Part shown: positions 4,757 through 45,589 of the stretch, piece after piece
Layout of the letters: each line of letters opens with the position of its first letter
How positions within the stretch are numbered: position 1 is the stretch's first letter
NCBI RefSeq assembly: GCF_006345805.1
Contig: NC_043011.1
Span: 11,222,001-11,286,000, forward strand
Direction of reading: 5' to 3'
Origin: Octopus sinensis
Lineage: Eukaryota
DNA: 64,000 nt
Made by a program: the position numbers and the translations under genes
The notes under the pieces: generated by a model
The model's database searches: none
What the model saw: only the letters and a program-made list of their open reading frames with translations
What the model was told of the DNA's origin: nothing

Positions 4757-5569
4757 GTAAGTCTTTGCAAATTTAATTCTTAAACATATTTTCCTTTGGA
4801 GAGAGGGTAGTTTCATGACCTTGGTAGGCATTTCCACACTGGAGAGTTTGATAAAATTGATATTCAGTTGAAATACTGTAGATTGATGCTTGTAGGAAAT
4901 TGCAAGAATAAATTCAGAGGGTTGCAGTGTATAGGAAAATGGCTTGGTAAATTGCAGGATCTGGGAAATAAAATAGAGTAGGATGTATTTTCGATGAGTG
5001 AATCAAATAGGAGAAATCTGCAAATTCAGAGACCATTGTACAAGAGGCTGTAAGAAAAAGAGTTAGTGGTTATAATCTGTTCGTCTTTGCTTGTCAGCAC
5101 TGAATAATCTTTGCTTGTCTTGGATGTTTGTGTGTGGTTCATAGTTGACTTTTGTGTAGGATCAGCTGCTATTCATTATGTTCTGACCCTGAACCAGTAG
5201 TCTAGCTTTTTTGGTACTATTTTAACAATGATATATATATATGTCACAATGATAAATCATCTAAGATTCTTAATATACTCTTCGAGTGGTGGAGGGACAG
5301 GGATGAAGACTAGGTTGTCATGTCTTCATTGAAAGATGTTTCAACTACCAGTTCTTGAAAGTTAAGTACAAATCCCATTACTGGTTAAATTTTTTTAAAA
5401 AGGGTCAGTTTGGTTTGACTTGGTTTATTTTGGCGGAAGGGGCCATATTTCTGGAGCAGATGTTATTCTTATAAGAATGAGGAATGTAATAGATTGGCAT
5501 CCTCTCCATTTAATGAATTTGAAAAATCAGCATTTATCCATACTGGGACCAGCACTTTCAATTTTATAG

Positions 5570-5841
5570 GGATCTTTTCGGTTTGAACGGCAGTTTTTAA
5601 CATAATTTCTAGGTAACTAAACACTTTTAAACTTCGTATACTGGTGGAATGTGTTTATAAAACATCTTTTTCTCTTGGCTTTATTGAGAAAATTCTATAG
5701 TTTGTAAGATATTTGTTGTTTTTTTTTCTTCAATTTCTGCAACTTCAACCAATCACTGACGTCTATTGAGGTAAAAAAAAACATTCTGTGCCGTATGAAT
5801 ATGTCCCTTGTTTAAGAAACAGATTGGGTTTATTTACATTT
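5570..5841 (+). mobile_element. Left half of hAT-like MITE
   Basis: TIR GGATCTTTTCGGTTTGAACGGCAGTTTTT preceded by TTTTATAG (5562-5569); right TIR absent here. Confidence 0.8.
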
Positions 5842-6178
5842 TATTTACGTGCCACCGGCACGGAGGGTCGGCGCGAGCAACGGCCACATTTGGATGGTTC
5901 GCTTATGTGCCACCAGCACTGGTATCACAGCTACAATTTCCATTGATGTTGATCGATTTTGATTTTGATTCTCATAATTACTCTAATAATGTTAAATATT
6001 TAAATGTTAAATATTTAATATAAATTTAAATGAGTTATATTAAAGAAAGACTAGTCACTATTTGTTTTGAGTAAGGTAAAATTTAATGTATCTTGTATTT
6101 CTTTTCATGTATCTTGTTTTGCATGCATGTGGCTATACTTGATTAATGAGTTTCTGTTTTGTTATTGTGATATTTTAG

Positions 6179-6574
6179 GACTGTCTTAAGTGAATCTAAA
6201 CCAAGACAGCTAGCAAAACCTGAAATACCTGTGAAGAAAGACTCGGATACTTCACCTGAAGAATTTATTTGTGGTAGCATTTTGGCACTTTCAGAAAAGT
6301 GGGGCTGCCTGAATCAGCAGGGCCCATTTGCAAGGCGCTTCTCACACATCTCTGATAGACGTGTGTCTAATGTACATACTCCTTTAGATAAATGTTTATC
6401 TAGTACTCAGGGTTCCACAGATCCAAGTTTTCATTCTGTAAATGATCGTCGTTTCTCTACTCAGTTTACTACTCTTGGTTCCTCCCATCTGGGTTCTTAT
6501 AACACACCAGTCTGCCATAAGTCATCATTGTCTGCAGGAAGCTATGAAAATGGCTCTTCTTCAAAGTTCCTCAG
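6179..6574 (+). CDS. TTK: TTK-like inner copy exon E1 (396 nt, phase 2-2)
   Basis: TTTTAG acceptor, GT donor, open frame TVLSESKPRQLAKPEIPVKKDSDTSPEEF...SSKFL; assigned by position and frame, not by homology. Confidence 0.6.
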
Positions 6575-7253
6575 GTTTGTAGTTCCAATCCCTTTTAACC
6601 GTCATTATTTTTGCAATTATTTTTTCTGTGCTAACATGATTTGGACAGGACTTCTTGAGTGGTGCTTTACAACAGATATCCTTTCTATTGCCAGTTCTTG
6701 TGTCTTACAAAATAAAACACAGAAAGAAAAAACAACTTAACTGTTTTATAGGTAAAACTTAACTCACTGATATTCCTCAAATGCTTGCCCATTATTGAGT
6801 ATTGTTTCTTGTACTGATACAATGAAGTTACCAATTTTAAAGTAGCTGACTATATCACTTTCACCATTGTTGCATTTTTTACCTTATCCCCTCCACCTAA
6901 ATGCTAACTGTGCTATATCCACCAGGATCATTTTGGTTAATCCTATTATGTTGAAACTGAATTTCTGAAACTTCATCTCTAATTGTAATTTCCCCACCTA
7001 CCAATAACTTCAAAGGTTTAAAACTGAAAATTAACCATATGAAATTAATCCAGCTGTCTCTGACTCCTAATGAAGAAGGGTTTGAAAAGTTTATGGTTGA
7101 TAGCCATCCTTTTGCAACCATGTAATAATAAAGATAAATGAGAGAAATTTGCGAGCATCCTGTCTTGTGAAATTGTCTTTTTCTCTGATTGGTAACATAG
7201 TACACTAATGATCAACTGTGACTTTGACTTGGAATTGCTCTACTCATCATTAA

Positions 7254-7457
7254 CCCTTTTGATACCAACCTGGCCAAAACTGTAGGACAAATATCTTGTT
7301 TTCAAAAGTATTGAATTAAAATCTTCCACCAAACCTCAGTCACAATTTATGTTCCAAACACTAGCTTAATGATAACTAAGTTATTTTACTAAATTCTTTG
7401 TTATATTTAAAATTAATTGAATGAAACACAGAGCATCTCAAAATAAATACGATAACA
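7254..7457 (+). mobile_element. piggyBac-type MITE, partial
   Basis: TTAA|CCCTTTT start; similar to 54153-54373. Confidence 0.55.
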
Positions 7458-8173
7458 GTGAATGGTACATTGAGGCATTCAAAAGGCTTGGAGATACCAT
7501 TTGGAGGAATAGACTGAATAAGAACCTGAAAATTATTCATGTTCACCATAACAATGGGGTAACAAGAGATGATGAATTATTATTATACGCTAATATATTG
7601 TGGCTGATGTCTTCATTTTAGTTGTTAGAATCACATTTCAGCTGTTGTGTCTTTTGGTCGTTATCAGGTACATGTTATGTGTCATAGCATACTTGTAATT
7701 TTGAACTGAACCCTTTTTTGAATCTACTGGAGTAAATTGTAGTCATTCTGTTGATCAGAATGAAGATATTCTCGTATTAGTTATTCTCCTACTTGTGATG
7801 CTGCTTGCTTTTCTTGTTTCAGCCTCCCTCCTCAGTAAATTACAATACTGTTACTCAAGATTAATCAACATTTGTGTTCACTATCTCGTTGTAACATTAA
7901 GTAATTAGGTTCAAGTTGAACGAGCAAGTGATGTCATAAGTAAAAGAATAACTTATATGAGAATATTCTAAGTATGAACAACAGAGTCAAAAATACCTGT
8001 CCTGGGTTTGATTGGAAATTCGAGACCTTGCAAAAGGCTGTTGAGTGCCCTGGCTAAAACTTTGTGATTCTAACAACCAAGATGAGGACTCTTGCCCTAA
8101 TATTATCAGAAAAGAATGATGTAAGAAATGCCGAAGCAGATAGTGAAACACTTTCAACTTTATTCTGTTATAG

Positions 8174-8280
8174 GATTAAGAAAATGCCACAGAGGGTGAC
8201 CGTCGATGAGGCCAAAAGCTATGACAGCTCTGACGAAGAAGACACCTCTATGAGCAAATTTACTCCAAAATCATCATCAG
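8174..8280 (+). CDS. TTK: TTK-like inner copy exon E2
   Basis: Polypyrimidine-TAG acceptor (phase 2), in-frame ATG at 8184, GT donor (phase 1) in frame with E3. Confidence 0.7.
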
Positions 8281-8973
8281 GTAACATACAAATACCTTGT
8301 CACTTCTTTAGTTTGTTACTTATTTGTTTGATTGTTTAGTAGGTTTGTTGACTGATTGATCAGCTAATAGGGTTGGTCGTTGGTTTCTGCTTTGCTTGAT
8401 TTGTTGACTGGTTAATTCATCCATTTTACTCTTTTACTTGTTTCAGTCATTTGACTGTGGCCATGCTGGAGCAGCGCCTTTTAGTCGAGCAAATCAACCG
8501 CCGGGACTTATTCTTTGTAAGCCTAGAACTTAATCTATCGGTCTCTTTTGCCGAATTGCTAAGTGACAGGGACGTAAACACCCCCAGCATCGGTTGTCAA
8601 GCAATGCTAGGGGGACAAACACAGATACACAAACATACACACACATACATATATACGACGGACTTCTTTCAGTTTCCGTCTACCAAATCCACTCACAAGG
8701 CTTTGGTTGGCCTGAGGCTATAGTAGAAGACACTTGCCCAAGGTGCCACGCAGTGGGACTGAATAATAAAAAAAAAAAAAATTGAAAAACAGCCAGGTGG
8801 AAATTGAATGACTAAGTGTCAACTGAAATGATCATTGTGCTACTAGCCCTGCTGTTTCTTTTTCGAGCAAATTATGAATTCTAAAATTAAATTGGTTTTT
8901 GTAGTCCTTGTTTGTTCTTTTGCATCTTCTTTTCTATGCACATTTAAATGAAATATTTTCCTATTGTCTCAAG

Positions 8974-10192
8974 TTTTTGCTGGAAAACGCATACAGACTC
9001 AAAGGCTAACTGGTACTATTCTTGAAGAAGGTTGTGACTCTAACTTGGAGAAAACTGAGGCTAAATTGTCTGAATCATCTGAGGATAGCATTTCTGTTAT
9101 TTCGCCAAAATTTGACCTTTTGCTATCATGCCATAATCAAGAGAAACCAGATTCCAATTTAACTGATATTAAAAGGACCAAGTCTTGTGACAATTCACAC
9201 TTGGTTGACAGAAACTTGTTCCTTAAAACAGCCAAGAAAGAATCGGCTGTTGCTAAATATGTTGATAATGATGATGATGAATTTATTGTTCCAGATAGCA
9301 GTGCTATCACAGGGGTTGAAAAACCAAAGAGCATAAACTCTCATCAAAACAAAACACATCTGCAAACCCCAAAGACAATATTATCTGACTCGCTTTTACC
9401 TTGTGGCCAAGCAAATATTTCTACTGCTTCACTGGGTCAGCCTAGTATTGGTTGTACACTGGATAATACAATTGAAACGATAAGCCCTCACCAATGTGAT
9501 ATACCCGTAAGTGAATCTCTGAAACATTGCTCTACCAATAATGAACAGCCAGAAGGAGATACTAGTCTAACAGAAATTAATAATCGCTTCAACATTTTAG
9601 ATACTTTCTCAGTTCTTAGCCAGAAGAAAAAAGCAAATTTATTGTCATTAAGACGAAACGAGTCTGTACAGGAATTCCTTCATTCCAATAGTGACTGTTC
9701 CAAGTTTGTTGCTTGTAGTAATGACTCTTGTAATGCAGCAGAGTATGGCAAGATAACATCATCAGAGTTAAAATACAAACCCGTCTTGAATGCCGATGAT
9801 AAGAACAAAAATGGTAATCCAGTTCAGTATAACCACTGTTTATCAAAAGATGTGCTGGAACATCTGCCCAAAGATCAATTGATATCTTGTCAAAGTACGA
9901 TTGCAGGCATACCAGACCAATACCAAAGCTCACCACAAAGTAGTAAACACAAACTAGTCCAGGAATGCTTTCAAAGCCAAATGCCACTTGAACATTCTAC
10001 GCTTGACAACCCACTTCCAGTCCAGCGCCAATTAGATTTCCTCAAAGATACTCCAAAATTATCTGAAAAGAGTCCTCAACAATTGACTGAAAATTCACAG
10101 TTGAAGGAAATGAATACACGGACCCCAAAAGACGCTAATCCTGAAGATTCAAGACCTGTAAAAGAAGGATGTTTATCAAGGGAAGAGAACAT
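8974..10192 (+). CDS. TTK: TTK-like inner copy exon E3 (intact)
   Basis: Inside the 410-aa ORF 8964-10196; CAG acceptor, GTAAGT donor, phase 1 to 2. Confidence 0.75.
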
Positions 10193-10490
10193 GTAAGTCT
10201 TTGCAAATTTAAATTGCAGGATCTGGGAAATAAAATAGAGTAGGATGTATTTTCAGAGACCATTGTACAAGAGGCTGTAAGAAAAAAAGTTAGTGGTTAT
10301 AATCTGTTCGTCTTTGCTTGTCTTGGATGTTTGTGTGTGGTTCACAGTTGACTTTTGTGTAGGATCAGCTGCTATTCATAATGTTCTGACCCTGAACCAG
10401 TAGTCTAGCTTTTTTGGTACTATTTTAACAATGATATATATATGTCAAGTGATATATATATGTCATATATATGTGACATATATATATGTC

Positions 10491-10685
10491 GGCGGCACGT
10501 AAAAAGCACCGACTACACTCACGGAGTGGTTGGCATTAGGAAGGGCATCCAGCTGTAGAAACACTGCCAGATCAGACTGGGCCTGGTGCAGCCTTCAGGC
10601 TTCCCAGACCCCAGTTGAACCGTCCAACCCATGCTAGCATGGAAAGCGGACGTTAAACAACGATGACGATAATGATGATGATGAT
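10491..10685 (+). mobile_element. RTE 3'UTR-derived repeat with (GAT)n tail
   Basis: Homologous to 60290-60479; paralogous to 46005-46175. Confidence 0.75.
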
Positions 10686-10783: not shown

Positions 10784-10865
10784 TCCTGCTAGTATCGATG
10801 CAGTCATCACTCCGCAGGTAAAGGATACTGCTCCCTCTGCAACGAATCTTGTACAGTTAGAGAAG
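10784..10865 (+). CDS. TTK: TTK-like inner copy exon E4
   Basis: TTTCAG/GTAGGT, 82 nt, phase 2 to 0; identical copy at 46272-46353. Confidence 0.7.
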
Positions 10866-10978: not shown

Positions 10979-11053
10979 AAACTACGTTCTTTAATGGTCA
11001 ACAATAAAGTGTACACAGTTGTAAAGAAGGTTGGCAAAGGTGGAAGCAGTACA
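10979..11053 (+). CDS. TTK: TTK inner copy exon E5, kinase subdomain I
   Basis: KLRSLMVNNKVYTVVKKVGKGGSST matches the Mps1 GxGGSS loop; GTAAGT donor. Confidence 0.9.
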
Positions 11054-11223
11054 GTAAGTACTTATTTATTTTATCTATGTGTGCTCAGGTGTGGCTTTAT
11101 GGTTAAGAAGCTTGTTTCCTAACTGTGTGGTCTGAGGCTTAGCCTCATTGTACAGCACTTTATACAAGTGTCTTATAATATAGTGTGTGCATGTGCTCTT
11201 CTCTTCGCATCATATGATGATTG

Positions 11224-11370
11224 GGATCTTTCCGGTTTGAATGGCAGTTTTTTAACATAATTTCCAGGTAACTAAAAAATTTTAAACTTCGTATACTGGT
11301 AGAATGTGTTTATAAAACATCTTTTTCTCTTGGCTTTATTGAGAAAATGTTATAGTTTGTAAGATATTTC
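11224..11370 (+). mobile_element. Truncated hAT-like MITE, paralogue of 46712-47127
   Basis: Same left TIR and same GATGATTG flank. Confidence 0.75.
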
Positions 11371-11865: not shown

Positions 11866-12020
11866 GTGTATGAAGTATTTGACCAGAGTGGAAATAGAAT
11901 GGCAGTTAAGTGCATTACTTTTGGTGACGCTCACGCAGTTACCATAGGGAGCTACAAAAAGGAGGTGATCCTTCTGAAGCAGTTGCAGTACAGTGACCGA
12001 ATCATCAAACTCTATGATTA
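11866..12020 (+). CDS. TTK: TTK inner copy exon E6, subdomains II-IV
   Basis: VYEVFDQSGNRMAVKCITFGDAHAVTIGSYKKEVILLKQLQYSDRIIKLYD matches Mps1 (SY..E..L..L..SD.II.LYD). Confidence 0.9.
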
Positions 12021-12499: not shown

Positions 12500-14102
12500 C
12501 CCTTTCGTTACTATATTTCTGACCAAAATACACCCCTTATGTGTTTCAATTAATTTCTAACGTAATCATAAATTTAGTCTGGTTTCATTAAACAACTATA
12601 ACTTTTTTATTTATCAATATATTAATCTGATTTTTGGAAGATAATTTAATGAAATATTCTCAACCAATTCTATACGTAATGGGGTGGTGGTGGGGGACAT
12701 TTTTTGGGTAAGCAGGGCACAAACTGTCTTTCTTAGGGGAGTGGTCAAAAGAATCAGTGATAAAGTAAATAAATGAATAAATAGAATAATTGAATAGAGT
12801 TTTAGGTAAATTAGAAGACTATCGCTTTTAGTCAGTTTGTTGTTGTTGTTATTAAGTGGAGGGAAGAAGTAGATATGTATACATAAAAGAACATATAAAT
12901 AAATATACATACAAACCCAGATACATACACATGCGAATATCCATACACATACATATACATATGCCCATGTATATACATACAGAAACAGTTTTTAAATTTT
13001 CACTCCATTCAGGTGCCAATTCGTTTTCTTTATCGCTGTTGGAGCTCTCGAATTCACTGTTTTCACTTTCAGAAAATGAAACATCAGATTCATTATCAAA
13101 TACCATGTGCTTTTTTTTTTCAGTCATAGAGTTAGATTTATGAAGGTCTTCAGTAGAAAATCCTTCGAATTCTGACTCGCTGCTTGATATAATGAAATTC
13201 GTATCCATTTTTTGTCAGAATTTTTGTCACAAAGTGACTTTAATTGCAGGTAGATACAGGTAAATTCAACAAAATATAAAATTATTAAAATTTTGTTCAA
13301 ACATTGCTATAGAAAATGGGTTATTAGCTATACAACAAAATTGGGTATACAACAAAATTTTACGATAGAATTTGTTATTCTGGGTAACTTTCTGATACCC
13401 ATAATAATATTCACGGCAAAATAGTCTTCACAAACTATCGTTTCTTTCGCTTTGTTTAAGTTTAGCGTAGCGGTTCGTTTCCGCCGTAATGATTTCAAAT
13501 AGGCTCATTCGAAAAAGTAAAAAGAAATAGTCTAAGGCTTTACTCTTCTGGGAAAGTCTGTGGCTTGGTCCAGTTTCTTCAGAAAAATCACCAAAAGAAA
13601 CAGTTTTTAAATTTTCACTCCATTCAGGTGCCAATTCGTTTTCTTTATCGCTGTTGGAGCTCTCGAATTCACTGTTTTCGCTTTCGGAAAATGAAACATC
13701 AGATTCATTATCAAATACCATGTGCTTTTTTTTTTCAGTCATAGAGTTAGATTTATGAAGGTCTTCAGTAGAAAATCCTTCGAATTCTGACTCGCTGCTT
13801 GATATAATGAAATTCGTATCCATTTTTTGTCAGAATTACAAATTTTGAAAACACAAGAGGAACAAATTTCGGAAAAAAATCTCTCAAAATTCAGGGAATT
13901 AAAATTACACTTCGATTATTGTACAAAACTGTAGTTGAACTGTTTACGAAGTATAATACGTGTTTTCACGAATGTAGTAAAGAGATTTGCTCTGATATTC
14001 TCATTTAAATATGAATACGTAAATTCGGGCGGCTTTGGGCGGTTTGGTCACATTAACCAAAATTTTTTTCGGACGGCTTTGGGCGGTTTGGTAACGAAAG
14101 GG
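12500..14102 (-). mobile_element. Internally deleted piggyBac element
   Basis: TIR CCCTTTCGTTAC...GTAACGAAAGGG, TTAA on both sides, empty TTAA at 49835-49838; acidic N-terminus plus YFFLLF...ITAETNRYA transposase motif (13428-13823). Confidence 0.9.
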
Positions 14103-23073: not shown

Positions 23074-23440
23074 ATAAAAACACACATGCGTACATATACA
23101 CCTATACATACATACATATACACACATAGATACATGCTCATAAGCACATACATATATATATATATATATCCATATTCCTATTCATATTCGTATCCATACC
23201 CGTATTCATATCCATATATATATAAAAATATATACATATATAAATATACATACATATATACATACATATATTCATATTTACATTCATACACATATATATA
23301 TGTACATATACACATACATAAACATATACACATGCATATACCTACACATAAATATATATTCGTGTACACACACATACATTAATACATACACACACATATA
23401 TACACACATATGCACATATACACACATACATATACACACA

Positions 23441-23825
23441 TCATCATCGTTTAGCGTCCGTTTTCCATGCTAGCATGGGTTGGACGGTTCTACTGGGGTC
23501 TGGGAAGCCAGAAGGCTTCATCAGGCCCAGTCAAATCTGGCAGTGTTTCTACGGCTGGATGCCCTTCCTAACGCCAACCACTCCGAGAGTGTAGTGGGTG
23601 CTTTTTACGTGCCACCCGCACAGGTGCCAGACAGAGCTGGCAAACGGCCACGAACGGATGGTGCTTTTTATGTGCCACCGGCACGGGGGCCAGGCGAGGC
23701 TGGCAATGGACACGAAACGGGGCGGTGCTGGCAACGGTTGCGAAACGGAAGGTTCTCTTACATGCCACCGGCACTGGTAACACATCTGCAATTTCCATTG
23801 ATCGATTTCCATTGATCGATTCCGA
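23441..23825 (-). mobile_element. RTE 3'UTR-derived repeat
   Basis: Near-identical to the reverse complement of 60090-60479; absent from the mirror arm at about 26990. Confidence 0.8.
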
Positions 23826-29177: not shown

Positions 29178-30175
29178 TAATGTATATGTATGTGTATGTA
29201 TATATGTATATATTGGTGTATGGGTGTATGTGTATGTGTGTGTAGGTATATACGTATATGTATATATATACATATATATATATGGACTTGTAGATTTTTG
29301 TATGTGTATATATGTATGTGTATGTGTGTAGGTATGTATATGCATGTATGCATTTATGTGCACATGTATGCATGCATGTGTGCATATATGTATTTATAAG
29401 CATATGGATGCGTATATATGCGTATGTATGTTTATATGCACATATGTTTTTATATGAGCATATGCGTTTATATATGCGGGCAGATATTTATGTGTGTTTA
29501 TGTGTACTGAAGTACGTTTATATATGTGTGTTTGTGTGTACATAGTTATGTATACGTTTATGTGAAAGTGGGTACATTTATGTATGTATGCATATGAGTA
29601 CTTGTGTGTGTATATGTATGTGTATATGTATATATATATATATATATATATGTGCATGTAGAGAGAGATATATACATATGTATAAGTGGATGAGGAGGTA
29701 ATGAGTGAGAGAACATGTGTGTTTGTGTATGTGTATGAGTGTGAGTGTGTGTGAGTGTTTGCATTTGTATCCGTGGGTAAAGAGATAGAAAGGAAGGGAG
29801 AGGGGAGCGGTAGATGGATTCCATTAGGCCTGTTGGAACCCTGGGGAATTCTAGGAACTTTTGGCGTTTGTCTACTCTAGCGCCACTAAATGTGTGTCGG
29901 CGGGTAGGTAGGTCATAGATTATACCTTTTATGATCTGGAAGACGGTCAAGGGAAAATAAAAATAAAAATAAAATAAGGGAGGAAGATGAGGAGAGAAGA
30001 AAAAAAAAATATATATGTGTGTGTGTGCATGGGTGTGTATATTTATATATATATGTGTAGATATAGGTGTGCGTGTGTTTGCGTGTTTGCATGTATGTGT
30101 ATTTGTATATATATGTGTATGTATATATATGTATATGTATGTATGTGTATATGTATATATATATATATATATATA

Positions 30176-31663
30176 TACCACCATCCACACCGCCCTTGCC
30201 AGAGCAATTTCTGTGGACCGTGTATCTGCTCTCCCTCCCTGAACCCGCCCTGTAGTCTCCCGCCTCCCTTTTCCCCTCACTACCCCACGACCCTACCTCT
30301 CCAACGCACCATTCTTCGAGCTTTCCGTCATCTCCAGTCCGACCTGTCCACTTCACACCTCTTCCCTAACCGACCCCTCCCCTCTTTCAAACGAGCGCAT
30401 AACCTTCGAGACCTTTTGGTCTGTAGCTCCTTCCCTGACCCTACCTCCCAACCTGGCTCGCTCCCCTGCTCCTGCCCACGTTGCCGCACTTGCCCTTACC
30501 TCTCCAACACTACCCTCCTCACTGGCACCCATCATCGACCCTATCGCATTATCAACTCCTTCACCTGCACCTCCAGCAATATTATCTATTGTGTCTCTTG
30601 CTCTCTCTGCCATTCCCTGTACATCGGACAAACGGGACGCCGCTTGGCTGACCGGTTCGCGGAACACCTTCGTGACATCCGCCTTGCGAATGACACACTG
30701 GTCTCACGCCATTTCCGCTCCACCGGTCACTCCTTGCAACACCTGTCTGTGTTCGGTTTGTCCTTACACAGAGGCCATCCGGATTCCCGTTTGCGCCGTG
30801 AACAGGAATTAATCTTCTCTCTTCGTTCTTATACGCCATTTGGTCTCAACTCTCCTCCCCCTCTCATCTAACCCCTAACCCCCCTCTCCCCCCTCCTCAT
30901 CTAACCTCCCCTCGACCCCTACTTCTTTTCAGTCCTTCATCCTTTCACCCCTACTCCTCTTCCCTTCTTCCCTCTTTCTCCCTCCCTCCTTCTTCCCTCT
31001 TCCCCTTCCCTCTTTCTCTCTGCTCCCTCCTCCCCTTCTCTCTCTCCCCCTCTCCTCCTCTCCCCTCCTTCCTTCTCCCCCCTTCTCTCCCCTCCTCTTC
31101 TCCTCCTTCCTTCTCCCCTTCCCCCTCCTCTTCTCCCCTCTTCTCTTTCTTTCTCCCCCCCTCCCCGTTCTCCCCCCTTACCTCCCCATCTTCCCTCATC
31201 TCCTCTCTCTGCACTACACCATACGACTTTACACATCACATCATATATACATACACACGTCCAGACCTCTCATACGCACTAATACTCACTCATACACACA
31301 CACACACTCTTCTCATATACACACACACACACACTCTTATGTTGGAGCGAGGTCATTTAACCCTATTATCTCCCCTAATTTCGCTCTTGCGTCTCACGTT
31401 TGATTTTTGACTTCTGGCCAAAATCAGATCGCCATGTTGATTCGCTAGCCTCTTCACACATTTTTTTTCTCTCCTTCTTTCTGTGTTTTTTCTCTGTGTA
31501 TCTTTCTGTTGAAGAGCGTAGGCTCGAAACATTAAAGACTTGTTTTATTTATATTTCCTGAGCGCCATACTAATACAATTGTTTGTTTGTATTCCACCTG
31601 CCTTCATCTTTTGTTTATTTCCGTAAACCTGCCTTTGTCTTTTGTCTATTTTCATAAAGCTTC

Positions 31664-31666: not shown

Positions 31667-31721
<55 letters not shown>

Positions 31722-31723
<2 letters not shown>

Positions 31724-32135
31724 TCATCATCATCATCATCATCATTTAACGTCCGCTTTCCATGCTAGCATGGATTGGACGGTTCAACTGGGGTCTGGGG
31801 AGCCCGAAAGCTGCACCAGTCCAGTCAGATCTGGCAGTGTTTCTACAGCTGGATGCCCTTCCTAACGCCAACCACTCTGAGAGTGTAGTGGGTGATTTTA
31901 TGTGCCACCGACACAGGTGCCAGACGAGGCTGGCAAACGGCCACGCTCGGATGGTGTTTTTTATGTGCCACCGACACAGGTGCCAGACGAGGCTGGCAGA
32001 CGGCCACGCTCGGATGGTGTTTTTATGTGCCACCGACACAGGTGCCAGATGAGGCTGGCAAACGGCCACGATCGGATGGTGTTTGTTACGTGCCCACAGC
32101 ACGGAGGCCAGTCGATGCGGTACTGGCTACGGCCA
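31722..32135 (-). mobile_element. RTE 3'UTR-derived repeat with ~3-4 internal ~60-bp units
   Basis: (CAT)n end, tandem GTGCCACCGACACAGGTGCCAG units. Confidence 0.75.
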
Positions 32136-32533
32136 CGTTATATATATATATATATGTGCTAGTGTATTTATATGTATGTATATGTGTGTCTGTATGTATA
32201 TACATGGGCATATGTATATGTATGGATATTCGCATGTCTATGTATGTGGGTTTGTATGTATATTTATTTTATATGTTCTTTTATGTATACATATCTACTT
32301 CTTCCCTCCACTTAATAACAACAACAACAAACTGACTAAAAGCAATAGTCTTCTAATTTACCTAAAACTCTATTCAATTATTCTATTTATTCATTTATTT
32401 ACTTTATCACTGATTCTTTTGACCACTCCCCTAAGAAAGACAGTTTGTGCCCTGCTTACCCAAAAAATGTCCCCCACCACCACCCCATTACATCTGCCTA
32501 AATGTATAAATGCCAGATCTTATTTTGACAGCA

Positions 32534-32689: not shown

Positions 32690-33286
32690 ATATGCTGTGC
32701 GCGAAAAGACCATGAAGGACAAGTGAGTCCAGCCCACTTATGCATGCCTTCCTCCCTTGGACACACAAAGACCTGTTGAGGCAAGCGAAGTCGATATTGA
32801 ACCTCATCTGACGATGGGCACCTATGCCTGTTGGGGCAAGTGGAATCGAAATTGAACCAATCCTATGACTGGCACCCGGCAGATGCCAGGACCCCTGGAC
32901 TGGAGATACGTAAAAAGCACTATCTGAATCGTGGCCGATGCCAGCGCCGCCTCGACTGGCGTCCGTGTCGGTGGCACGTAAAAAGCACCATCCGAATCGT
33001 GGCCGAAGCCAGTGCCGCCCCGACTGGCTTCCGTGCAGGTGGCACGTAAAATGCACCAATCCGACCGTGGCCGATGCCAGCCTCGCCTGGCACCAGTGCA
33101 GGTAGCACGTAAAAAGCACCCACTACACTCACGGAGTGGTTGGCGTTAGGAAGGGCATCCAGCTGTAGAAACATTGCCAGATAAGACCGGAGCCTGGTGC
33201 AGCCTTCTGGCTTCCCAGATCCCCGGTCGAACCGTCCAACCCATGCTAGCATGGAGAACGGACGTTAAACGATGATGATGATGATG

Positions 33287-33288
<2 letters not shown>
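32690..33288 (+). mobile_element. RTE-type 3'UTR repeat (long subfamily); similar copy at 62926-63480 (-)
   Basis: Ends ...GGACGTTAAACGATGATGATG. Confidence 0.7.
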
Positions 33289-33317
<29 letters not shown>

Positions 33318-34534: not shown

Positions 34535-34701
34535 TGAACTCGACTATCAGAAGAACTGTTTGAATTTGGTGTTGGAGTTTGGCGACATTGACCTTGCAAG
34601 TTTGTTCCGTAGCCAATATAAGACAAACAAAATACCCCAAATGATGGTCATGTGCTACTGGACCCAGATGCTGGAAGCTGTTCTGGTACTCCATAAAGAA
34701 G
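34535..34701 (+). CDS. TTK: TTK inner copy exon E7, hinge and subdomains V-VIa
   Basis: LVLEFGDIDL...YWTQMLEAVLVLHKE (Mps1 MECGNIDL...YWKNMLEAV). Confidence 0.9.
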
Positions 34702-35796: not shown

Positions 35797-35990
35797 GTAT
35801 AGTACATTTGGATTTGAAACCTGCAAACTTCCTGATTGTTGGAGGCCAATTGAAGCTCATAGATTTTGGTATTGCTGATGTAATACAGACTGGTAAAACT
35901 GGCATTAACCAGGAGATACTGATGGGGACACCTGATTACATGAGTCCAGAAGCAATTGCTGTCTACCTGGATAACTCTAGAAGCCAAAAA
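35797..35990 (+). CDS. TTK: TTK inner copy exon E8, catalytic and activation loops
   Basis: [26 protein letters not shown]...[11 protein letters not shown]. Confidence 0.95.
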
Positions 35991-38011: not shown

Positions 38012-38188
38012 ATAGGCTTGAAGAGTGACATTTGGTCTCTCGGTTGTATTCTCTATTTTATGGTCTACGGTAAAACTCCATTCCAAGAGATTAGAAACAC
38101 AACAGAAAAACTGATAGCAATAAGAAGTGATAAGTTCAAGATCAAATTTGCTGATGTCAGAAATAAAGAGCTATTGGATACAATGAAG
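38012..38188 (+). CDS. TTK: TTK inner copy exon E9, subdomains IX-X
   Basis: IGLKSDIWSLGCILYFMVYGKTPFQ. Confidence 0.95.
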
Positions 38189-38669
38189 GTACGTTTCAAT
38201 TGTTTGTATGAAATAGTTCAAATTGGTGGTTGATGTTTGTGTGGAATTAGGTGATCTACCTACACTCAGATGGCTGGTGTTTGTGTGGGTTTTTGATGAA
38301 ATATTCACACTCTGGAAACAAGAACATGTATAATTACATGGGATTAATCCAATCTGTGATCTATGTATGATTAGATGCAACGGTGTACAACTAGTGGCTG
38401 GTATGTGTGTTATTAGATGGAATAGTCTGCATACTGGTAATTGATGGCTTTGTGTATGAGTAGATGAAATACTCCACATTCTGGTAGATGGTACATGTAT
38501 GTGTGATTAGACAGAATGGTCCATGCACACACACACACATGCACGCGCGCGCGTACACTGATGGTTGGGATTAAATGGTAGTTGGTGGGTGTGTGATTAG
38601 ATTGAATGGTCTACACTAGTGATTGCTATTAGGCTGAATAGTCCATGGTCTTGTGGTTGGTGTAAATGT

Positions 38670-39065
38670 CATCATCATCATTATCATCATCATTTAACGT
38701 CCGCTTTCCATGCTAGCATGGGTTGGACGGTCCAACTGGGGTCTGGGAAGCCAGGAGGCTGCACCAGGCCCAATCTGTTCTGGCAGTGTTTCTACAGCTT
38801 GATGTCCTTCCTAACGTCAACCTCTCCGTGAGTGGAGTGGGTGCTTTTTACATGCCACCGGCACAGGTGCCAGACGAGGCTGGCAAATGGCCACAATCGG
38901 ATGGTGCATTTTACGTGCCACCGGCACAGAGGCCAGTCGGGGCCGCGCTGGCAACGGCCATGTTCGGATGGTTCTCTTACATGCCACATGCACTGGTATC
39001 ACAGTACAATTTCCATTGATTTTGATCGAGATTTCACTTGCCTCAACAGATCTTCGCAAGTAGAG
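38670..39065 (-). mobile_element. RTE 3'UTR-derived repeat
   Basis: Paralogous remnant at 61620-61950. Confidence 0.7.
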
Positions 39066-39571
39066 TTTATCTACATGTATATTCAGATAAACTGATCCAC
39101 CTCTGTTGGAGAGTGCTTGTATATAATATTAGATGGAATCATTCACACCCTAGTAGCTAACAGATGTATGGATTAGCCTACACTTTGGTGGCTATTGCGT
39201 GAGATCAAATGGAATAGTTCTCATTGAGGTAGGAGTATGTATTAAGATACAATGATCCACATTCTAGTCGATGTATATCAGTAGATGAAATGGTCGTCAT
39301 TGGTGTCTGCTGCATGTATGCATGGATGTAAAAAGAACTAATCTACTACTGTTTATCTATCTCTTGAACTCTCTATTTTCTAGCAAGCTGTATACCCTGC
39401 CTCTTTCCTTCCTTCCATCATTCCTTCACTTTTTATTTATGTTCAATCTTTTCACACACGTCTCACATATTCACACACCCATACATTAACACATATTGAA
39501 GAAAAATTCCAACAAGATTATGTGGATACCAGTATATAGGTTTTGAGATCAAATCCCCTCCAAATGTTTAA

Positions 39572-39996: not shown

Positions 39997-40078
39997 TGCT
40001 GTCTGTGCAGAGATCCCAAAGAAAGACCGTCTATTGAAGAAATTCTGCAGCATCCATATTTGAGTGAAATGACAATAG
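39997..40078 (+). CDS. TTK: TTK inner copy exon E10, subdomain XI
   Basis: CCLCRDPKERPSIEEILQHPYL. Confidence 0.95.
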
Positions 40079-41123
40079 GTATTTGAGATATTTTTCATCA
40101 CTACTTAAAATTATTGATAGTAACTTGTATAATGTGTGTAGATATAGTTGTTTTTGTTGATGTGTTACTGTGGTTATCCCTGCTTGAATAGGGCTCTGCT
40201 CTGTAAATCATTTAATTCTTAAAGCTCTGTAGTACTTCTCTATATAAAACTTCATGTCCTATTAGATACATTTTGCTGATACAATAATATAATAATAACT
40301 CTTCTGCTCTTCAGAGATATAAAATTTGAATTTTGTATAATATATCAAATGGTAGTTTTTTTTAAAATTTGAAGTAATATTATAAAATGGTGTTTGTTTA
40401 AAATATAAATTAAAATTTAAAAATTAAAATGTAATAATTAAAATTAAAATGTAAAATTTAAAATTTAAAAATTTAAATGTAAAAATTAAAATTTTTAAAT
40501 TACACCAATCAACTTAAGTAATTTAGTAAACAATATAATAATTGTTGGCATACATTGTGAATGTGGGCTTTACCTCTTATCATGTCACTTCTACCCGCCA
40601 AGGTAGATTGAATACATATAAGTGGATTAGTTGTGAGTATTTTAACATATATTTACAAGATATTGACTCATGGGTATTGATTTTCTATCTCAGAATTAAT
40701 TTTATGCTCCATTTAGTCTCTGTAACTTCAAAACTGTATGACTTTGATTAGAAAAAGTATTCAATGGTTTTGTAAGGCCCAACAGATTAAGTGTTGTTTG
40801 CTCTTATTAAAATAATTATGCTCTCCTCAGAAACCCTGCAGTATGCTAAGAATCTACATTTAAAACAGATCTGTAATTTTTTTTTAATCTTTACCACTCA
40901 CTAACAAAAGTACCAATACAACAAACAACTATATGATAGCTCCACTCCTGTTCAGAATCCCTTAGAAATAGCTCTCAGGCTAAAACAATGCAAACGCATT
41001 GTGACTAGCGATGTGTAGCAACATCTGATGGTCTGTTCGGTCACGTGATCACGTGATATATAAATATACTTAACATTTTCATTCTTATTGTTGTAACTTA
41101 CTTTAATGTTCCTTAAATTCTAG

Positions 41124-41227
41124 GAAACCTGAAGCCTGAAGAGAAACCACCTATACCAGATTCAGATTTACCTGTTGGTACTGTGAAAAATAAATTCCTG
41201 GCAAGTTTGGCTACTTCAAATGGGTAA
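41124..41227 (+). CDS. TTK: TTK inner copy exon E11, C-tail; ends at TAA 41225-41227 or splices at GTAAGT 41224
   Basis: TAG acceptor in phase with E10; NLKPEEKPPIPDSDLPVG... Confidence 0.6.
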
Positions 41228-43182
41228 GTATTTGATACTTTTGAATTGAAAATGGCCACGTTGCTAAGAGAGTGGACAGTTTGATTGTTTTTAGGTCATG
41301 TCTGCTGCAGGTATTTTGCTCTGTAACATTTCATTTAACATTGCTGAGATCAGTTAGCTATCAAGAATAAAAAGTACTAGATTACCTGGAGACATTACCA
41401 ACGATAAACTAATATCCTATCCACAAGGAAAATTGGTGACCCCGACGTGATTTCCTATAGGTGGTTTTAGGCTGCCATGAGCTTTCTCTTAAGTTATATT
41501 AATATTGTATATTCTCTAATTAGTTTTGTTACAGTAATGTAATGCTATTTATTGCGTTTCCTATTTGGAAATAGATTATTTTATTTGGCTTTTTAAGTAA
41601 GGGTGTATATAATGATTAAAACGTCACTTATAACTTAAGTGTTATCATTATACGCAAACCCGAACTTCAGTATATAACGCCATAGAGAAATATACTTATG
41701 GAACGCTAAGAATATTAGCGTCATGTATGTATAATATTATCTTCATGTTCATTTAACCGCTATAAGAAAATATAATCTAATGATTACAGAAATGAATATT
41801 TATTTATACACAGTTGAAAAACGTGAAGAGAAAACATTTTCTTAATTAGTTTTATTATATAAATATAACATTTTATATTATGTACATGTGAAAGAAAAGA
41901 TTATTTTCGTCGTGTAGAAGTAAGACTATATATATTCACTAGCTAATTCATAAAGCTAACTAATAGATGAATCAACAATTCAAAATAGACTTGTTGACTT
42001 TCCTTTGGACATGGCATGAAAAATCACCAATGTCTCAAAGGAGTGAGTGTCATGGAGTTTCATTACATCCAGTAAACACTAAAGTTTTTTCCAAAATCCA
42101 GGGTTTTTATAACTGCTCAACTTGACTTAAAAGAATCGAAATCCATTACAAATATTCTTTACGTAACTTTTTAGAATTCTTATATGAGCAGTTATATTAA
42201 CCAATTGAAAAAACGACCACAATAATTCTTCGGCAATGCGACATTACGTCATATTGCCAGCTACTGCAAATTGGCGCGTTATTTTAAAATGGCTAAAATG
42301 GCTACTTGCAACATATAGCCTTTGGCCAGAAAAATTGTTAAAATTTTGCGAAAAAGAAATTCGTAATACATATATATTTCAATACAACATTTGAATTAAT
42401 AGTTACAACACATCAATATATACAATGCTGTTATAAATTACATGTTAAACATATGAAATTAGCCTTTCAATACGGCTTTACAATTATAATGTTCATATAC
42501 AGTTCATTTCAGTTCATTGGAAAAAAAAAATCTCTTTTTCTTTTTTTTATACCTGTTTCTGTCTGTCCCACTCTAACCTTTCATCATCTGGCACAAGACC
42601 ACTTCCTTGAAAGCCCCCTTCTCTCTCAAATGATCTTTGTCTTGCAAGTTACTTGGTGGCCCTGCTAGAGCTGGTGCCATGTAAAATGCATCCATTGCAC
42701 TCTGTATAGTGGCTGGTGTTTACATTCAGCTGTAAAACCATTCTAAAACTGACCTCACCTGTGTTTGTGCCTCATAAAAGCACTCAGTCCACTCTGCTGG
42801 GTGGTTGGTGTTAGGAAGGGCATCCAGCTGTAAAAACCATGCCAAAACAGACACTGAAGCATGATACAGTCTTTTGCTTAGCCAGCTTCTGTCAAACCAT
42901 CTAACCCATGCCAGCATGGAAAGTGGGCATTAAATGATGATGTTGATGATAGTACAAGTGGAGTATTTTGGTTAGCCATATAGTAACAAAAGGTTTAAGA
43001 AGCTTGCTTTCAAATCATGTGGTTAGGGGTTTGATCCCACTGAGTAAATATTGTTCTACTATAGCCATGGAGCAACCAATAATTTGTGAGTGAAATTGGT
43101 TGTTAGAAACAAAAGAAGCCTGTTGTGTTTGTGTGTATTTCTCACTGCGTTCATGCAGTGGAAACACCTTTCTTCACCTGCA

Positions 43183-43345
43183 GGGAAGATGATGGCCTCA
43201 GTTTTGAGGGATGCAAAAGGCATTGTGTTTTTTGACTGTCTTCAAAAGGGCCACACCATCAATTGAGAGTACTATGCTAACTTACTGAGGCTGTTATGAA
43301 AGACTATCAAGACCAAATGCCCAAGAAAACTGATAAAAAAAGGTC
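43183..43345 (+). mobile_element. Mariner transposase fragment
   Basis: GKMMASVLRDAKGIVFFDCLQKGHTIN*EYYANLL. Confidence 0.75.
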
Positions 43346-43346
43346 T

Positions 43347-43665
43347 TACAGTTCTATATTTAAGAGATGAGGAATTATGTACATTATTTACATTTGACGG
43401 ATATTTGTCAAATGTTGGCATAGTGGTTGAGAGTGTGGGCTACTAACCCCAAGATTCCGAGTTCAATTCCAGGCTGTGACCTGAATAATAATAATAGTAG
43501 TAATAATAATAACATTGAAAAATACCTCAGGAATGAGAACCCAGGTTCAAAATTTCCCCAAGACACCTGATGAAGGCTGGAGGGTATATCAGCTGAAAGA
43601 TTGTGTTAATAACAAACAAGATGAGGACAAATATCTGTCAAATGTAAATAATGTAAATAATAATC
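43347..43665 (+). mobile_element. Inverted-ended element with tRNA-like head and degenerate hammerhead (43562-43607)
   Basis: ATTATTTACATTTGACGGATATTTGTC ... GACAAATATCTGTCAAATGTAAATAAT; GCATAGTGGTT/GAGTTCAATTCC boxes; GACAC-CTGATGA-A-GGCTG..CAGCT-GAAA..GTGTT. Confidence 0.55.
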
Positions 43666-44365
43666 AGGGCAATGGTTTCAATGACTAGATTAAATATCAG
43701 TAATATTAAAGGGATAAATTACATAACTGTAATATTACTATGTATTATCCTTACATAAGTGAACTCACCGTCATTTTAATAGATCAAAATTTAACTTAGT
43801 CTAATCTAAGTGTTCACCTTAAGCATAGTCATCATCTCCCAACTTGAAACAATCTGAACTACTTAATTGCAATAGAGATTCAGTCTGTGTGGTTCCTATT
43901 AAATTCATTGTATCAAGCAGGTTATGTTGAACCTTGTTCTAGGTGCAATAACAGTGGTTCCTTATTAAATGTTGTTTAAAATATTATAAATTCAATGCTC
44001 ATTGTCAGTGTAAAATCTTTATTGTTTTTATATATATTAGGTTGTTTGGAAATACTGATTTTTCGCAAACATGTTTTCAAATTTGATTTAAGTTGTTATT
44101 TTTGTAATGTTTTACATGAAATTTTACATGCTTAATAATTGATGTGTACTCATCATCATCATCATCATCATTTAATGTCTACCTTCCATGCTGGCTTGGG
44201 TTGGATAGTTTGATAGGAGCTAGCCAGACAGGAGCCTGCACCAGACTTCTGTGTCTGTCTTGGCAGGGATTTTTATGGCTGGATACCCTTCCTAACACCA
44301 ACCAACCAACCAACAGAGTGGACTGAGTGCTCTTTACGTGGCACAAGCACAGATAAAGTCAGTTT

Positions 44366-44612
44366 TACAATTTCAACCAATCATTGACGTCTATTGAGGT
44401 AAAAAAAAACATTCTGTGCCGTATGAATATGTCCCTCGTTTAAGAAACAGATTGGATTTATTTACATTTGTGAAGAAAAAAAGATACCCTTCCGTCCACC
44501 CCTAACCCTAACCCAGATTGAAATGCAATAGATCGATACCAGGGTCATAATTATGGGTGACAATTTCATATGACACCGCTAGAAAAAATTGCCGTTCAAA
44601 CCGAAAAGATCC
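44366..44612 (+). mobile_element. Right half of hAT-like MITE
   Basis: Right TIR followed by TTTTATAG (44613-44620), same as the left flank of 5570. Confidence 0.8.
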
Positions 44613-45589
44613 TTTTATAGTGACTATTAATGGCAGTGTTTACAACTGGATATAATTTTTAAAATTTTGGTAGTTTCAGAAGAGAGACAAGTTAAAATAT
44701 TTGACTTTTAAAGTAATTTATTGCAGTTTCTTGTCTCTGTTGCTTCATCATTTCTTGCACTTTGATCAAAGATCAACGTGCAGCTAAACTGGAATAATGA
44801 TGAAGATGTGATGATTTAGTCTGCAATACTGAAACAGCAGTGATGAAACTGAATTTTAGCAGAATATTGAAATAGCAGTGATTAAATGGAATTTTAGCAG
44901 AACCAACCCTGATTCCCTTGCGTATCATTTTCCACAAATGATATCTAATATAGTAATGTGTATCAACCACAAATATCTTACAAACCATAGAATTTTCTCA
45001 ATAAAGCCAAGAGAAAAAGATGTGTTATAAACACATTCTATCAGTATACGAAGTTTAAAATTTTTTAGGTACCTAGAAATTATGTTAAAAACTGCCATTC
45101 AAACCGAAAAGATCCCTAAATAGTTTGAAGAGGAGGGAAGTTACTGAAGTCTTCATAGAGCTGTTGTAGATGATGCTGAGCTTGAACTTGTGTAGGAAGA
45201 CACGTAAAGGAAATGTTTAAGCAGTTCATTCTTGAGGGTTGCAGTCACGATAGAAATGCCCAGGCAAATTATTTATTACAAGAAATAGGATTAATGAGAG
45301 GAACAGTGAATGTGGAGTGCTACTTGTTTGGTCAGAATACCAGCAACTGCTATAGTAGCAGTAGAAGCATTTGAGAGATAGCACCTTGTTATATGTGCAC
45401 TGTGATATTGAGAGTTAAGTATTTTTATCAGAGACTCGATACAAGCAGTATTCATTTACGTTTCAGTTGAATGTACCTGTTGTATCCACTCAAAAGTAAT
45501 AATAAAGCTCAATGATTGTTAGTTGTTTGTACAATCCCCTGTTCCTCAAAATAAAGATCATTGTATCTGTTTGAATAACACTTAAACAT

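Follow-up and report, generated by a model that had tools for sequence, protein, structure and literature searches.

A copy of most TTK/Mps1 exons within an intron of the same gene, and a small transposon split in two, in the common-octopus lineage

The TTK/Mps1 locus and its two sets of exons

We analyzed a 64,000-nucleotide stretch of Octopus sinensis DNA (hereafter the window; chromosome CM016873.1:11,222,001-11,286,000), which matched GCA_006345805.1 at 100% and covers the TTK/Mps1 locus. In the common-octopus lineage, this gene holds a copy of most of its own exons within one intron, where a small transposon is split in two. The encoded proteins matched Pfam PF00069/PF07714 and contained the HxD catalytic loop and DFG motif of the eukaryotic kinase catalytic domain, with DIWSLG present in both the inner (inserted) and the outer copy; Pfam gave no match on the non-kinase exons. 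In a protein search, the closest named homologs were TTK/MPS1, and XP_036365368.1 and CAI9736307.1 are named "dual specificity protein kinase TTK-like" and "kinase TTK-like", respectively. A long query was required, as short protein queries matched only fragments or one distant octopod contig.

The native gene extends past both ends of the window. Five further coding exons lie upstream (185 residues by tblastn), which may resemble the TPR domain of Mps1, and the final two follow 3.2 and 9.4 kb past the window end. The TTK gene range in O. bimaculoides is 229 kb. Within the window, the outer copy comprises the following exons:

1-72, plus strand: outer E2, 3' part (exon start 36 bp upstream of the window), identical to inner E2; located by tblastn with P0127
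3521-4757, plus strand: outer large E3, frame broken by a 1-bp deletion (TTT>TT) at 4203
46272-46353, 46467-46541, 49205-49359, 52358-52524, 55915-56108, 61088-61264 and 62654-62735, plus strand: outer E4-E10

The 1-bp deletion in E3 was seen in this O. sinensis assembly only, and the orthologous O. vulgaris copy is intact.

A 38.5-kb block of TTK exons lies between the two halves of a MITE. As a first-pass annotation of the window had proposed, this block is a same-strand copy of exons from the gene itself:

6179-6580, plus strand: inner E1 (TVLSESK...KFLR), 99% to XP_036365368.1 and 89% to O. bimaculoides TTK
8174-8280, plus strand: inner E2, from comparison with the outer copy and tblastn
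8974-10192, plus strand: inner E3, open frame, with an 18-bp in-frame deletion specific to O. sinensis
10455-10486, plus strand: joint in inner intron 3, with palindromic TATATATGTCA-type filler, adjoining a truncated SINE
10784-10865, plus strand: inner E4 (PASIDAV...LEK)
10979-11053, 11866-12020, 34535-34701, 35797-35990, 38012-38188 and 39997-40078, plus strand: inner kinase exons E5-E10

At the intron 3 joint, ~2.1 kb including the MITE is absent, and the inner E6-E7 intron is swollen by ~19 kb of satellites and TEs. The description of the copy as near-complete was too generous: it holds 11 of the 18 coding exons (~78% of the coding sequence) and lacks the five N-terminal exons (TPR-like N-terminus) and the two C-terminal exons (C-terminal tail). 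The exon order given earlier (E2, E3, then E1-E11, then E4-E10) is right under its own numbering, except that "E11" (41124-41223) is not the last exon but a copy of the exon directly preceding E1 in the native gene. A first gene model, with the start at the ATG at 8184, 41124-41223 as the C-terminal exon and the splice phase after E3 unsettled, was overturned by octopus TTK proteins.

The split MITE and the joints

The insert is bounded by the following elements:

5562-5569, plus strand: left target-site duplication (TSD) TTTTATAG, from the sequence and O. vulgaris comparison
5570-5841, plus strand: left part of the MITE, positions 1-272, with terminal inverted repeat (TIR) GGATCTTTTCGGTTTGAACGGCAG; 94.5% to family member 53987-53718
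44359-44612, plus strand: right part of the MITE, positions ~161-410, from BLAST and alignments
44613-44620, plus strand: right TSD TTTTATAG, from the sequence and O. vulgaris comparison
44965-45118, minus strand: inverted partial MITE, positions 1-154, 94% identical to 5567-5720

The features that the first-pass annotation had reported for the MITE were all recovered. The left half is preceded and the right half followed by TTTTATAG, and the chance of such an 8/8 match, computed from base composition, is ~6e-5. Intact family members also carry 8-bp TSDs (GATGATTG at 46712-47126; AACACTAT/AACGCTAT, 7/8, at 53575-53987 on the minus strand), and GGATCTTTTCGGTTTGAACGGCAG and its complement stand at the ends of three complete copies, including that of O. 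vulgaris. Judged only by TSD length, the element would be hAT-like. The overlap of the halves, given before as ~100 bp, measured 112 bp (5730-5841 and 44359-44469), with six mismatches, all transitions, and one indel between them. Both halves contain the 9-A run, which is unstable (9, 5 and 8 A across three O. vulgaris copies). The earlier start of the right half (44366) and that found by BLAST (44359) differ within the zone of microhomeology only.

O. vulgaris retains an intact paralogous copy of this MITE (L005, 31758-32171). It has TTTTATAG on both sides, and its left flank is that of the left half and its right flank that of the right half. The two halves were therefore once one element, a single MITE in the E3-E4 intron that was split, as had been claimed. 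Together, the split MITE and the inverted partial MITE form an inverted repeat with a spacer of ~616 bp, which is long for a strong fragile site. The fragment 5929-5947 (CTACAATTTCCATTGATG) was also considered as a MITE piece and rejected, as the SINE family normally has this sequence at its 3' end.

The ends of the insert are not simple:

5842-5974, plus strand: left joint and insert start, TATTTAC followed by a 5'-truncated SINE (tail and 3' end)
40246-40976, plus strand: filler of 731 bp, no homolog in the 138-kb locus
40977-41365, plus strand: 94-bp dispersed repeat, then a 300-bp copy of the exon preceding E1 (exon 41124-41223)
41366-44358, plus strand: filler of 3.0 kb, no source in the locus

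Where two template switches had been proposed, at least five novel joints were found, the further ones at 10454/10487, 40245/40246, 40976/40977, ~41066-41070 and 41365/41366. The left joint reads ...TTTATTTACATTT-TATTTAC-GTGCC and thus has the reported TATTTAC microduplication. In the form ACATTT-TA-TTTACGTGCC, TATTTAC occurs again 4 nt past its copy in the MITE, and TTTAC is common to the SINE. Alternatively, a single later substitution in the SINE's own TTTTTAC could have produced TATTTAC. The intact parent SINE lies in the outer intron between exon NLK and E1, 2.2-2.7 kb upstream of the window. The right joint shows TA-AAT microhomeology and the repeat-to-exon-copy joint 1-2 nt of microhomology. 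Compared with the parental sequences, these three joints have 1-6 nt of microhomology or microhomeology and no long homology; beyond this, the joints show a small templated-looking insertion.

Filler totals 4.1 kb at the right joint and begins 167 bp past E10, where inner/outer homology stops. The 300-bp exon copy, which includes 58 bp upstream and 142 bp downstream of the exon, shares 97.7% identity with the region of the native exon (3.0-3.3 kb upstream of the window) and was clearly templated in the same gene. The 7-nt TATTTAC and the about 40-bp palindromic intron-3 filler fit templated insertion as well, although other explanations exist. No source was found in the 138-kb locus for ~3.7 kb of filler (40246-40976 and 41366-44358), which could represent ancestral intron that the outer copy has since lost; in O. 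vulgaris, too, the same exon is followed by the first 59 bp of the 3.0-kb filler. This filler closes with a SINE that belongs to a second subfamily and is truncated at its 3' side (44150-~44371). We considered whether the SINE pieces at the two ends might be halves of one SINE, as from a circular intermediate cut at one point, and rejected this because they belong to two subfamilies. The left piece, tail and 3' end, is 88% identical to 61790-61927; the right piece, a head, is 82% identical to 42740-42950 and ~75% to the left piece's subfamily.

Given 38.5 kb within a transposon-rich intron, a large transposon (Helitron, Maverick or Pack-type) that captured TTK exons and inserted into the MITE might be suspected. 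However, no terminal repeats (TIR, LTR; inverted or direct) were found at the insert ends, which lie in two unrelated truncated SINEs. In addition, the flanking duplication is 112 bp rather than a short TSD, and an intact parent of the left end lies within the same gene, 8 kb upstream. We regard transposon capture as highly improbable.

Conservation in O. vulgaris and age

In the O. vulgaris assembly, which is ONT-based and purge_dups-treated (PMC10700109), single matches were found to the 24-mer at the left joint and to the 21-mer at the right joint, and long collinear alignments between the two species cross both joints. In the kinase part, inner and outer copies differ by 1.58% and 1.60% within each species, and orthologs by 0.36% and 0.38%. 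The tree is ((OsI,OvI),(OsR,OvR)), grouping by copy, not by species, and E1-E2 follow the same pattern (0.69% between orthologs vs 1.1-1.6% between paralogs). The duplication is older than the separation of the two species.

An assembly artefact, in which an alternative haplotype was misplaced between two contigs broken in the MITE, would be in keeping with a copy divergence (1.1-2.3%) near the reported heterozygosity of 1.22% (PMC10700109) and with the position of all joints within repeats. Yet these joints recur in data independent as to species, individual and sequencing technology, and they persisted after purge_dups; the O. sinensis assembly, as summarized in PMC10700109, was made from PacBio long reads (Li et al. 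2020). Moreover, no Ns were found near the joints, the 3' end of the insert is not collinear with the outer gene, and the MITE region exists in three forms, namely the left half, the right half (5% different) and a deletion. Because the joints are present in the independent O. vulgaris assembly and the copies are reciprocally monophyletic across species, we rejected this explanation, whose probability is close to nil. The structure is real and common to both species, and is not the false haplotype duplication that had been raised as a concern. The other concern, an ortholog with E1 naturally between E3 and E4, was not borne out by the O. bimaculoides and Argonauta proteins, which run directly from E3 to E4 and have no intervening E1.

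O. vulgaris carries one more repeat unit, in which this MITE is intact and has the flanks described above, and a third joint 350 bp downstream of the MITE; the breakpoint of this unit is the inner edge of the inverted partial MITE. The left unit behaves as a tandem repeat, the E1-E3 unit being present in three copies in O. vulgaris and two in O. sinensis. Tracts of 0-0.3% divergence indicate gene conversion. Divergence dating of the separate joints did not discriminate between one and several events. By a crude clock, the rearrangement is about 4-11 My old.

Origin, possible product and relation to known systems

Relative to the single-copy gene order, the copy pattern is duplication-triplication-duplication, all in direct orientation. 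One duplicated segment runs from the SINE in the intron before E1 to MITE position 272, and the other from MITE position ~160 to 167 bp past E10. As both are repeated, the 112-bp MITE overlap exceeds each of them by one copy. A DUP-TRP-DUP pattern with templated insertions at the joints has been described for template-switch events (PMC6902434), and here the DUP-TRP-DUP pattern is accompanied by at least two joints in cis (5841/5842 and 44358/44359) plus the internal joints.

The first-pass annotation had explained the locus by a single two-switch event that copied a near-complete gene into the MITE. The two outer joints lie 112 bp apart within one 410-bp element, both have microhomology, and the overlap would be natural had the switch back landed upstream of the point where the copying left the MITE. 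However, the insert is not collinear: E10 is followed by 731 bp of no-source DNA, the 94-bp repeat, the pre-E1 exon and 3 kb of no-source DNA. It also lacks seven coding exons, and O. vulgaris has a further unit with a different joint. The non-collinear right joint contradicts this model in its simple form, and we consider it improbable.

The locus could instead stem from two or three simple tandem duplications that occurred independently and at different times, through end joining or unequal exchange, each breaking in or beside the MITE; this origin is plausible if somewhat doubtful. Among duplications, the tandem class is the most frequent (PMC6902434). The left joint simply connects an ~8.2-kb unit head to tail, and the additional O. 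vulgaris unit has its own joint. The E1-E2 copies (1.1% ±0.2) look somewhat younger than the kinase copies (1.6% ±0.2), but the two values lie only ~1.7 standard errors apart, and gene conversion blurs the comparison. Three breakpoints in ~0.75 kb of a >60-kb gene would require a strong hotspot, two other full MITEs in the gene are unbroken, and the right joint is complex. The parsimony argument made earlier against two tandem duplications is weakened by the third joint in O. vulgaris and the tandem-repeat behavior of the left unit.

A whole-unit tandem duplication (pre-E1 exon through E10) could also have come first, after which the E1-E3 block of the second unit would have entered the MITE of the first, either in a segment swap with three breaks or when an excised or circular unit was reinserted. 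We find this quite unlikely. The pre-E1 exon follows inner E10 as at a tandem-unit boundary, both insert ends map to one native intron, and the joint and filler in inner intron 3 lie exactly at the expected MITE site. Against this, the end SINEs are of different subfamilies, not halves of one element, the native intron is just 1.1 kb and lacks the 3-kb filler, and extra deletions would be required.

The locus is most likely a real, fixed, lineage-specific complex intragenic duplication of TTK/Mps1 that arose in the common ancestor of O. sinensis and O. vulgaris with template-switch joints, in one event or serially. A stalled or broken replication fork may have produced the joints by microhomology-primed template switching (FoSTeS/MMBIR type), either in one multi-switch event or in two to three tandem duplications at one fragile spot. 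This spot would be the MITE with the inverted partial MITE 350 bp away; the breakpoints are at MITE ~160, MITE 272 and the inner edge of the inverted partial MITE. Unequal recombination would later have altered how often the E1-E3 unit occurs (O. vulgaris has three copies, O. sinensis two). The MITE of the middle copy would have been lost in a 2.1-kb deletion, and many TEs would have inserted. None of the joints formally distinguishes replication from the end joining of broken DNA.

The new exon-exon joins (E3 to E1, E10 to the copied exon, and the copied exon to E4) are all in frame, and both kinase copies have open frames with all splice sites kept. The E3 indels (18 bp and 27 bp) are in frame, barring the 1-bp deletion confined to the long-read O. 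sinensis assembly, and the annotations of both species read through. The rearrangement accounts for the annotated TTK models, which are two genes in O. sinensis and a protein of 2572 residues in O. vulgaris. The in-frame joins, open kinase frames and read-through annotations suggest a possible two-kinase Mps1. That the rearranged locus is a working gene, whose predicted Mps1 with two kinase domains and two or three middle-region copies is expressed and kept by selection, is a tentative and rather unlikely proposal. If made, the read-through protein would give an essential spindle-checkpoint kinase a very young tandem-kinase form.

For structural-variation biology, the locus is an unusually legible fossil of a complex duplication. 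Because the split transposon, the intact sister copy, the parent SINE and the outgroup order are all available, a type of rearrangement usually seen as fresh human disease alleles can be studied here after millions of years, and its fixation, copy-number change and gene conversion over that time are open to study.

In the annotations of both species, a single polypeptide is predicted to have two complete kinase domains, as in tandem-kinase proteins of the RSK/MSK or JAK type, which were born by internal duplication; unlike in those, the two predicted octopus domains are 97.5% identical and young. The MITE resembles hAT-like MITEs (8-bp TSD, short TIR, non-coding) in its ~410-bp length, 24-bp TIR, 8-bp TSD and several copies per 100 kb. 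Here it was only a passive breakage site, and transposase cutting is not indicated because its breakpoints are internal, not at the termini. As in intragenic tandem exon-block duplication with unequal crossing-over, E1-E3 stand head to tail, the sister species have 2 vs 3 copies, and near-identical tracts suggest gene conversion. The octopus case differs in its two overlapping blocks with a common breakpoint element and in one joint with 4.1 kb of foreign or templated filler.

The locus is best read as a clear instance of replication-error rearrangement of a kind already known, and the proposed mechanism is not new. Like FoSTeS/MMBIR rearrangements at human PLP1 and MECP2 (PMC6902434), it has several joints in cis and a short interval one copy above its duplicated flanks, together with microhomology or microhomeology, templated or templated-looking insertions of a few nt to hundreds of bp, and SINE sequence at breakpoints. 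Unlike the human disease alleles, which are de novo, it is fixed in two species, at about 4-11 My by the crude clock. It is all in direct orientation, unlike the common human form with an inverted triplication, and, unlike the PLP1 and MECP2 cases, it is intragenic and frame-preserving.

A partial TTK duplication within a split MITE

We identified the gene as TTK/Mps1 from its kinase motifs and homologs; the ORF spanning 6171-6737 hit octopus TTK proteins at 99% (O. sinensis XP_036365368.1), 89% (O. bimaculoides), and 50% (Argonauta). Once the encoding contigs were fetched, the window corresponded to O. sinensis CM016873.1:11,222,001-11,286,000 with 100% identity, and 54.6 kb of upstream and 19.5 kb of downstream sequence were also included. 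Window self-comparison revealed two pairs of paralogous blocks, 1-5254 with 8209-10454 and 10487-40245 with 45987-62902, both on the plus strand and with 96-99.8% identity and many transposon-sized indels. An insert (5842-44358), whose TTK exons we term the inner copy, separates two MITE pieces within the flanking gene, or outer copy. The MITE-related features were as follows.

5570-5841, left MITE piece, preceded by TTTTATAG
ending at 44612, right MITE piece, followed by TTTTATAG
46712-47126, complete family member
53575-53987 (minus strand), complete family member
44965-45118, inverted partial MITE

Alignment of the pieces with both complete members gave a full size of ~410 bp, with 24-bp terminal inverted repeats and 8-bp target-site duplications. 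The pieces overlap by 112 bp (5730-5841 versus 44359-44469), differing there by six transitions and one indel. The unsplit state was found in O. vulgaris, where it is kept as a paralog: an extra upstream E1-E3 unit (the repeated left block) at the locus, L005, contains an intact MITE (31758-32171) with TTTTATAG on both sides; to its left lies the sequence that precedes the left half, and to its right the sequence that follows the right half. The two pieces were once one element. A split MITE with a nested copy, as described in the first-pass annotation, is thus borne out by the window coordinates and self-comparison. Two further family copies (11220-11369, a paralog of the intact 46712-47126 copy, and 44965-45118) end at position ~146-150, just before the T9 run, whereas the right joint of the insert lies just after it. 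These family copies cut near the T9 run look like the product of a recurrent breakpoint within the element.

Judging from the proteins of O. bimaculoides and Argonauta, and from the outer copy, the native order is five N-terminal exons, the NLKPEEK...SNG exon, E1, E2, a large E3, E4, six kinase exons (E5-E10), and two C-terminal exons. The earlier numbering of E1-E10 matched this order, but "E11" (41124-41223) proved to be a duplicate (97.7%) of the NLKPEEK exon, natively just upstream of E1. The insert therefore contains 11 of the 18 coding exons in permuted order, and is an intragenic partial duplication rather than the near-complete gene copy previously proposed. Its parts are listed below.

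5842, insert start, within a SINE tail; its intact parent SINE is in the intron preceding E1 of the outer copy
after the left joint, insert body, E1-E10
insert tail, in order: 731 bp (40246-40976); a 94-bp dispersed repeat; the 300-bp exon copy; 3.0 kb (41366-44358), the last part of which is a truncated SINE from a second subfamily

Homology of the insert start to the parent region begins 2367 bp upstream of the window. The left joint reads ACATTT-TA-TTTACGTGCC, so that two TATTTAC copies stand 4 nt apart; the MITE and the SINE have TTTAC in common. This arrangement is consistent with a brief slip backwards before a switch, although the TATTTAC could be the SINE's own TTTTTAC with one later change. 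In inner intron 3, ~2.1 kb including the MITE is replaced by ~32-40 bp of palindromic filler adjoining a truncated SINE. Homology between the copies ends 167 bp past E10, where the outer copy's (TA)n/SINE begins, and no source for the 731-bp and 3.0-kb tail segments was found in 138 kb of the locus. The right joint shows TA-AAT microhomeology with the MITE, and the insert ends carry no terminal repeats.

An abundant SINE family occupies ~7.5% of the window, and four rearrangement breakpoints lie in or at its members. These begin with (ATC)n and continue with a ~190-bp head, 63-bp tail units that vary in number, and a conserved 3' end. Members include:

3077-3310, 10487-10684, 23408-23720, 31667-32139, 32827-33314, 38663-39070, 45595-46173, 59941-60485, 61600-61961, 62890-63331, and others

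Authenticity and age of the duplication

An assembly artefact was the main rival explanation, as divergence between the copies (1.1-2.3%) is near the reported heterozygosity of 1.22% (PMC10700109). We therefore compared the locus with L005, which represents another species and another individual in the purge_dups-treated ONT assembly GCA_951406725.2 (PMC10700109); the O. sinensis assembly, GCA_006345805.1, was built from PacBio reads. The 24-nt left-joint and 21-nt right-joint sequences each occurred once in L005, and a collinear alignment spanned both joints. In four-way alignments (4.4 kb), inner-outer distances within species were 1.58% and 1.60%, whereas ortholog distances were 0.36% and 0.38%; the inner (I) and outer (R) copies of O. 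sinensis (Os) and O. vulgaris (Ov) therefore group as ((OsI,OvI),(OsR,OvR)). The same grouping was obtained in the E1-E2 region. This independent assembly argues against the false haplotype duplication that the first-pass annotation had proposed checking, and the structure is real and ancient.

Since the copies group by copy across species, the duplication predates the O. sinensis/O. vulgaris split, put at 2.5 My (PMC10700109). A crude clock gave an age of 4-11 My. The O. bimaculoides TTK protein is single-copy, and the duplication is younger than the split from that species.

Additional units and neighboring elements

In O. vulgaris, the end of the extra unit lies 350 bp downstream of the intact MITE and coincides exactly with the inner edge of the inverted partial MITE, which places three breakpoints (MITE ~160, MITE 272, and this edge) within ~0.75 kb. 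Together, the MITE and its inverted partial copy make up an inverted repeat of 154 bp at 94% identity, separated by a spacer of ~616 bp. The extra unit then connects with the 3' half of the NLKPEEK exon through 106 bp and a repeat, a joint that lacks a counterpart in O. sinensis:

L005 32523-33756, where the first E1-E3 unit meets the second: 106 bp of unmatched sequence; a 249-bp repeat; the NLKPEEK exon 3' half; 59 bp also present at window 41366-41424; other SINEs (626 bp)

In O. sinensis, the left copy is the ortholog of the second O. vulgaris unit, yet its first ~500 bp resembles the first unit. The pattern points to loss of a unit in O. sinensis through unequal recombination or to collapse of one in its assembly.

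A LINE at 57044-60479, in the outer E8-E9 intron, carries ORFs (57384-59868) of reverse-transcriptase and PHD-like type. Because the site is empty (AAAAAGAAATAGTC) in both O. vulgaris and the paralogous repeat at 13505-13545, this insertion postdates the species split. The inner E6-E7 intron (12496-33286) is enlarged by ~19 kb of TA/CA-type satellites and contains:

15315-17046/16998-18729 and 18687-20960/20794-23086, internal tandem duplications
14255-14731/32601-32139, ~470-bp inverted repeat pair
29987-30871, Penelope-like GIY-YIG ORF

In a more distant octopod (Logan contigs L001/L002; SRR11869384, SRR11869391), E3 shows 83-89% nucleotide identity and, compared with O. sinensis, lacks ~490 bp internally; its intron 3 agrees with the outer copy rather than the inner.

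Coding state and origin

The kinase exons of the two copies differ at 15 of 850 nucleotides (seven synonymous and seven non-synonymous codons), with every splice site and frame intact in both; when polarised with outgroup proteins, derived changes were spread over both copies. E3 carries an 18-bp indel in the inner copy and a 1-bp indel in the outer copy, each confined to O. sinensis, and a 27-bp indel in the first O. vulgaris unit. The 1-bp indel, a TTT>TT deletion at 4203 unique to the O. sinensis assembly, is possibly an assembly or long-read consensus error, and because of it NCBI split the locus into XP_036365368.1 and XP_029645935.1. By exon phase, the three new exon joins are all in-frame, and the annotated models of both species run across them, predicting proteins of 1378 residues (O. 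sinensis) and 2572 residues (O. vulgaris). Both kinase copies (35797-35990 and 55915-56108) have the catalytic loop HLD in both species, in place of the HSD of O. bimaculoides and Argonauta; this change would be either older than the duplication or spread by gene conversion.

Tracts of 0-0.3% divergence between copies look like gene conversion. Over ~1.5 kb spanning E1 and the next intron, two paralogs from each of the two species (window ~6370-7870, the outer copy upstream of the window, and L005 units 2 and 3) showed 0-2 differences, against ~5-10 expected, which suggests gene conversion or strong constraint.

The two-switch FoSTeS/SDSA-like event initially proposed is not right, as the insert and the extra O. 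vulgaris unit carry further joints. Nor does its parsimony ranking above tandem duplications hold. Two or three overlapping tandem duplications yield a product topologically equal to that of one multi-switch event, and the divergence values (1.1% in E1-E2 versus 1.6% in the kinase part) do not separate one event from several. We favour a replicative origin, which may have involved iterative template switching at a structure-prone site in one or several events. The copies form a duplication-triplication-duplication pattern in direct orientation, with microhomology at the joints and at least one clear templated insertion. In human rearrangements, this pattern with such joints has been attributed to iterative template switching (FoSTeS/MMBIR) (PMC6902434). 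The locus is thus a new, well-preserved example of an already known rearrangement class.
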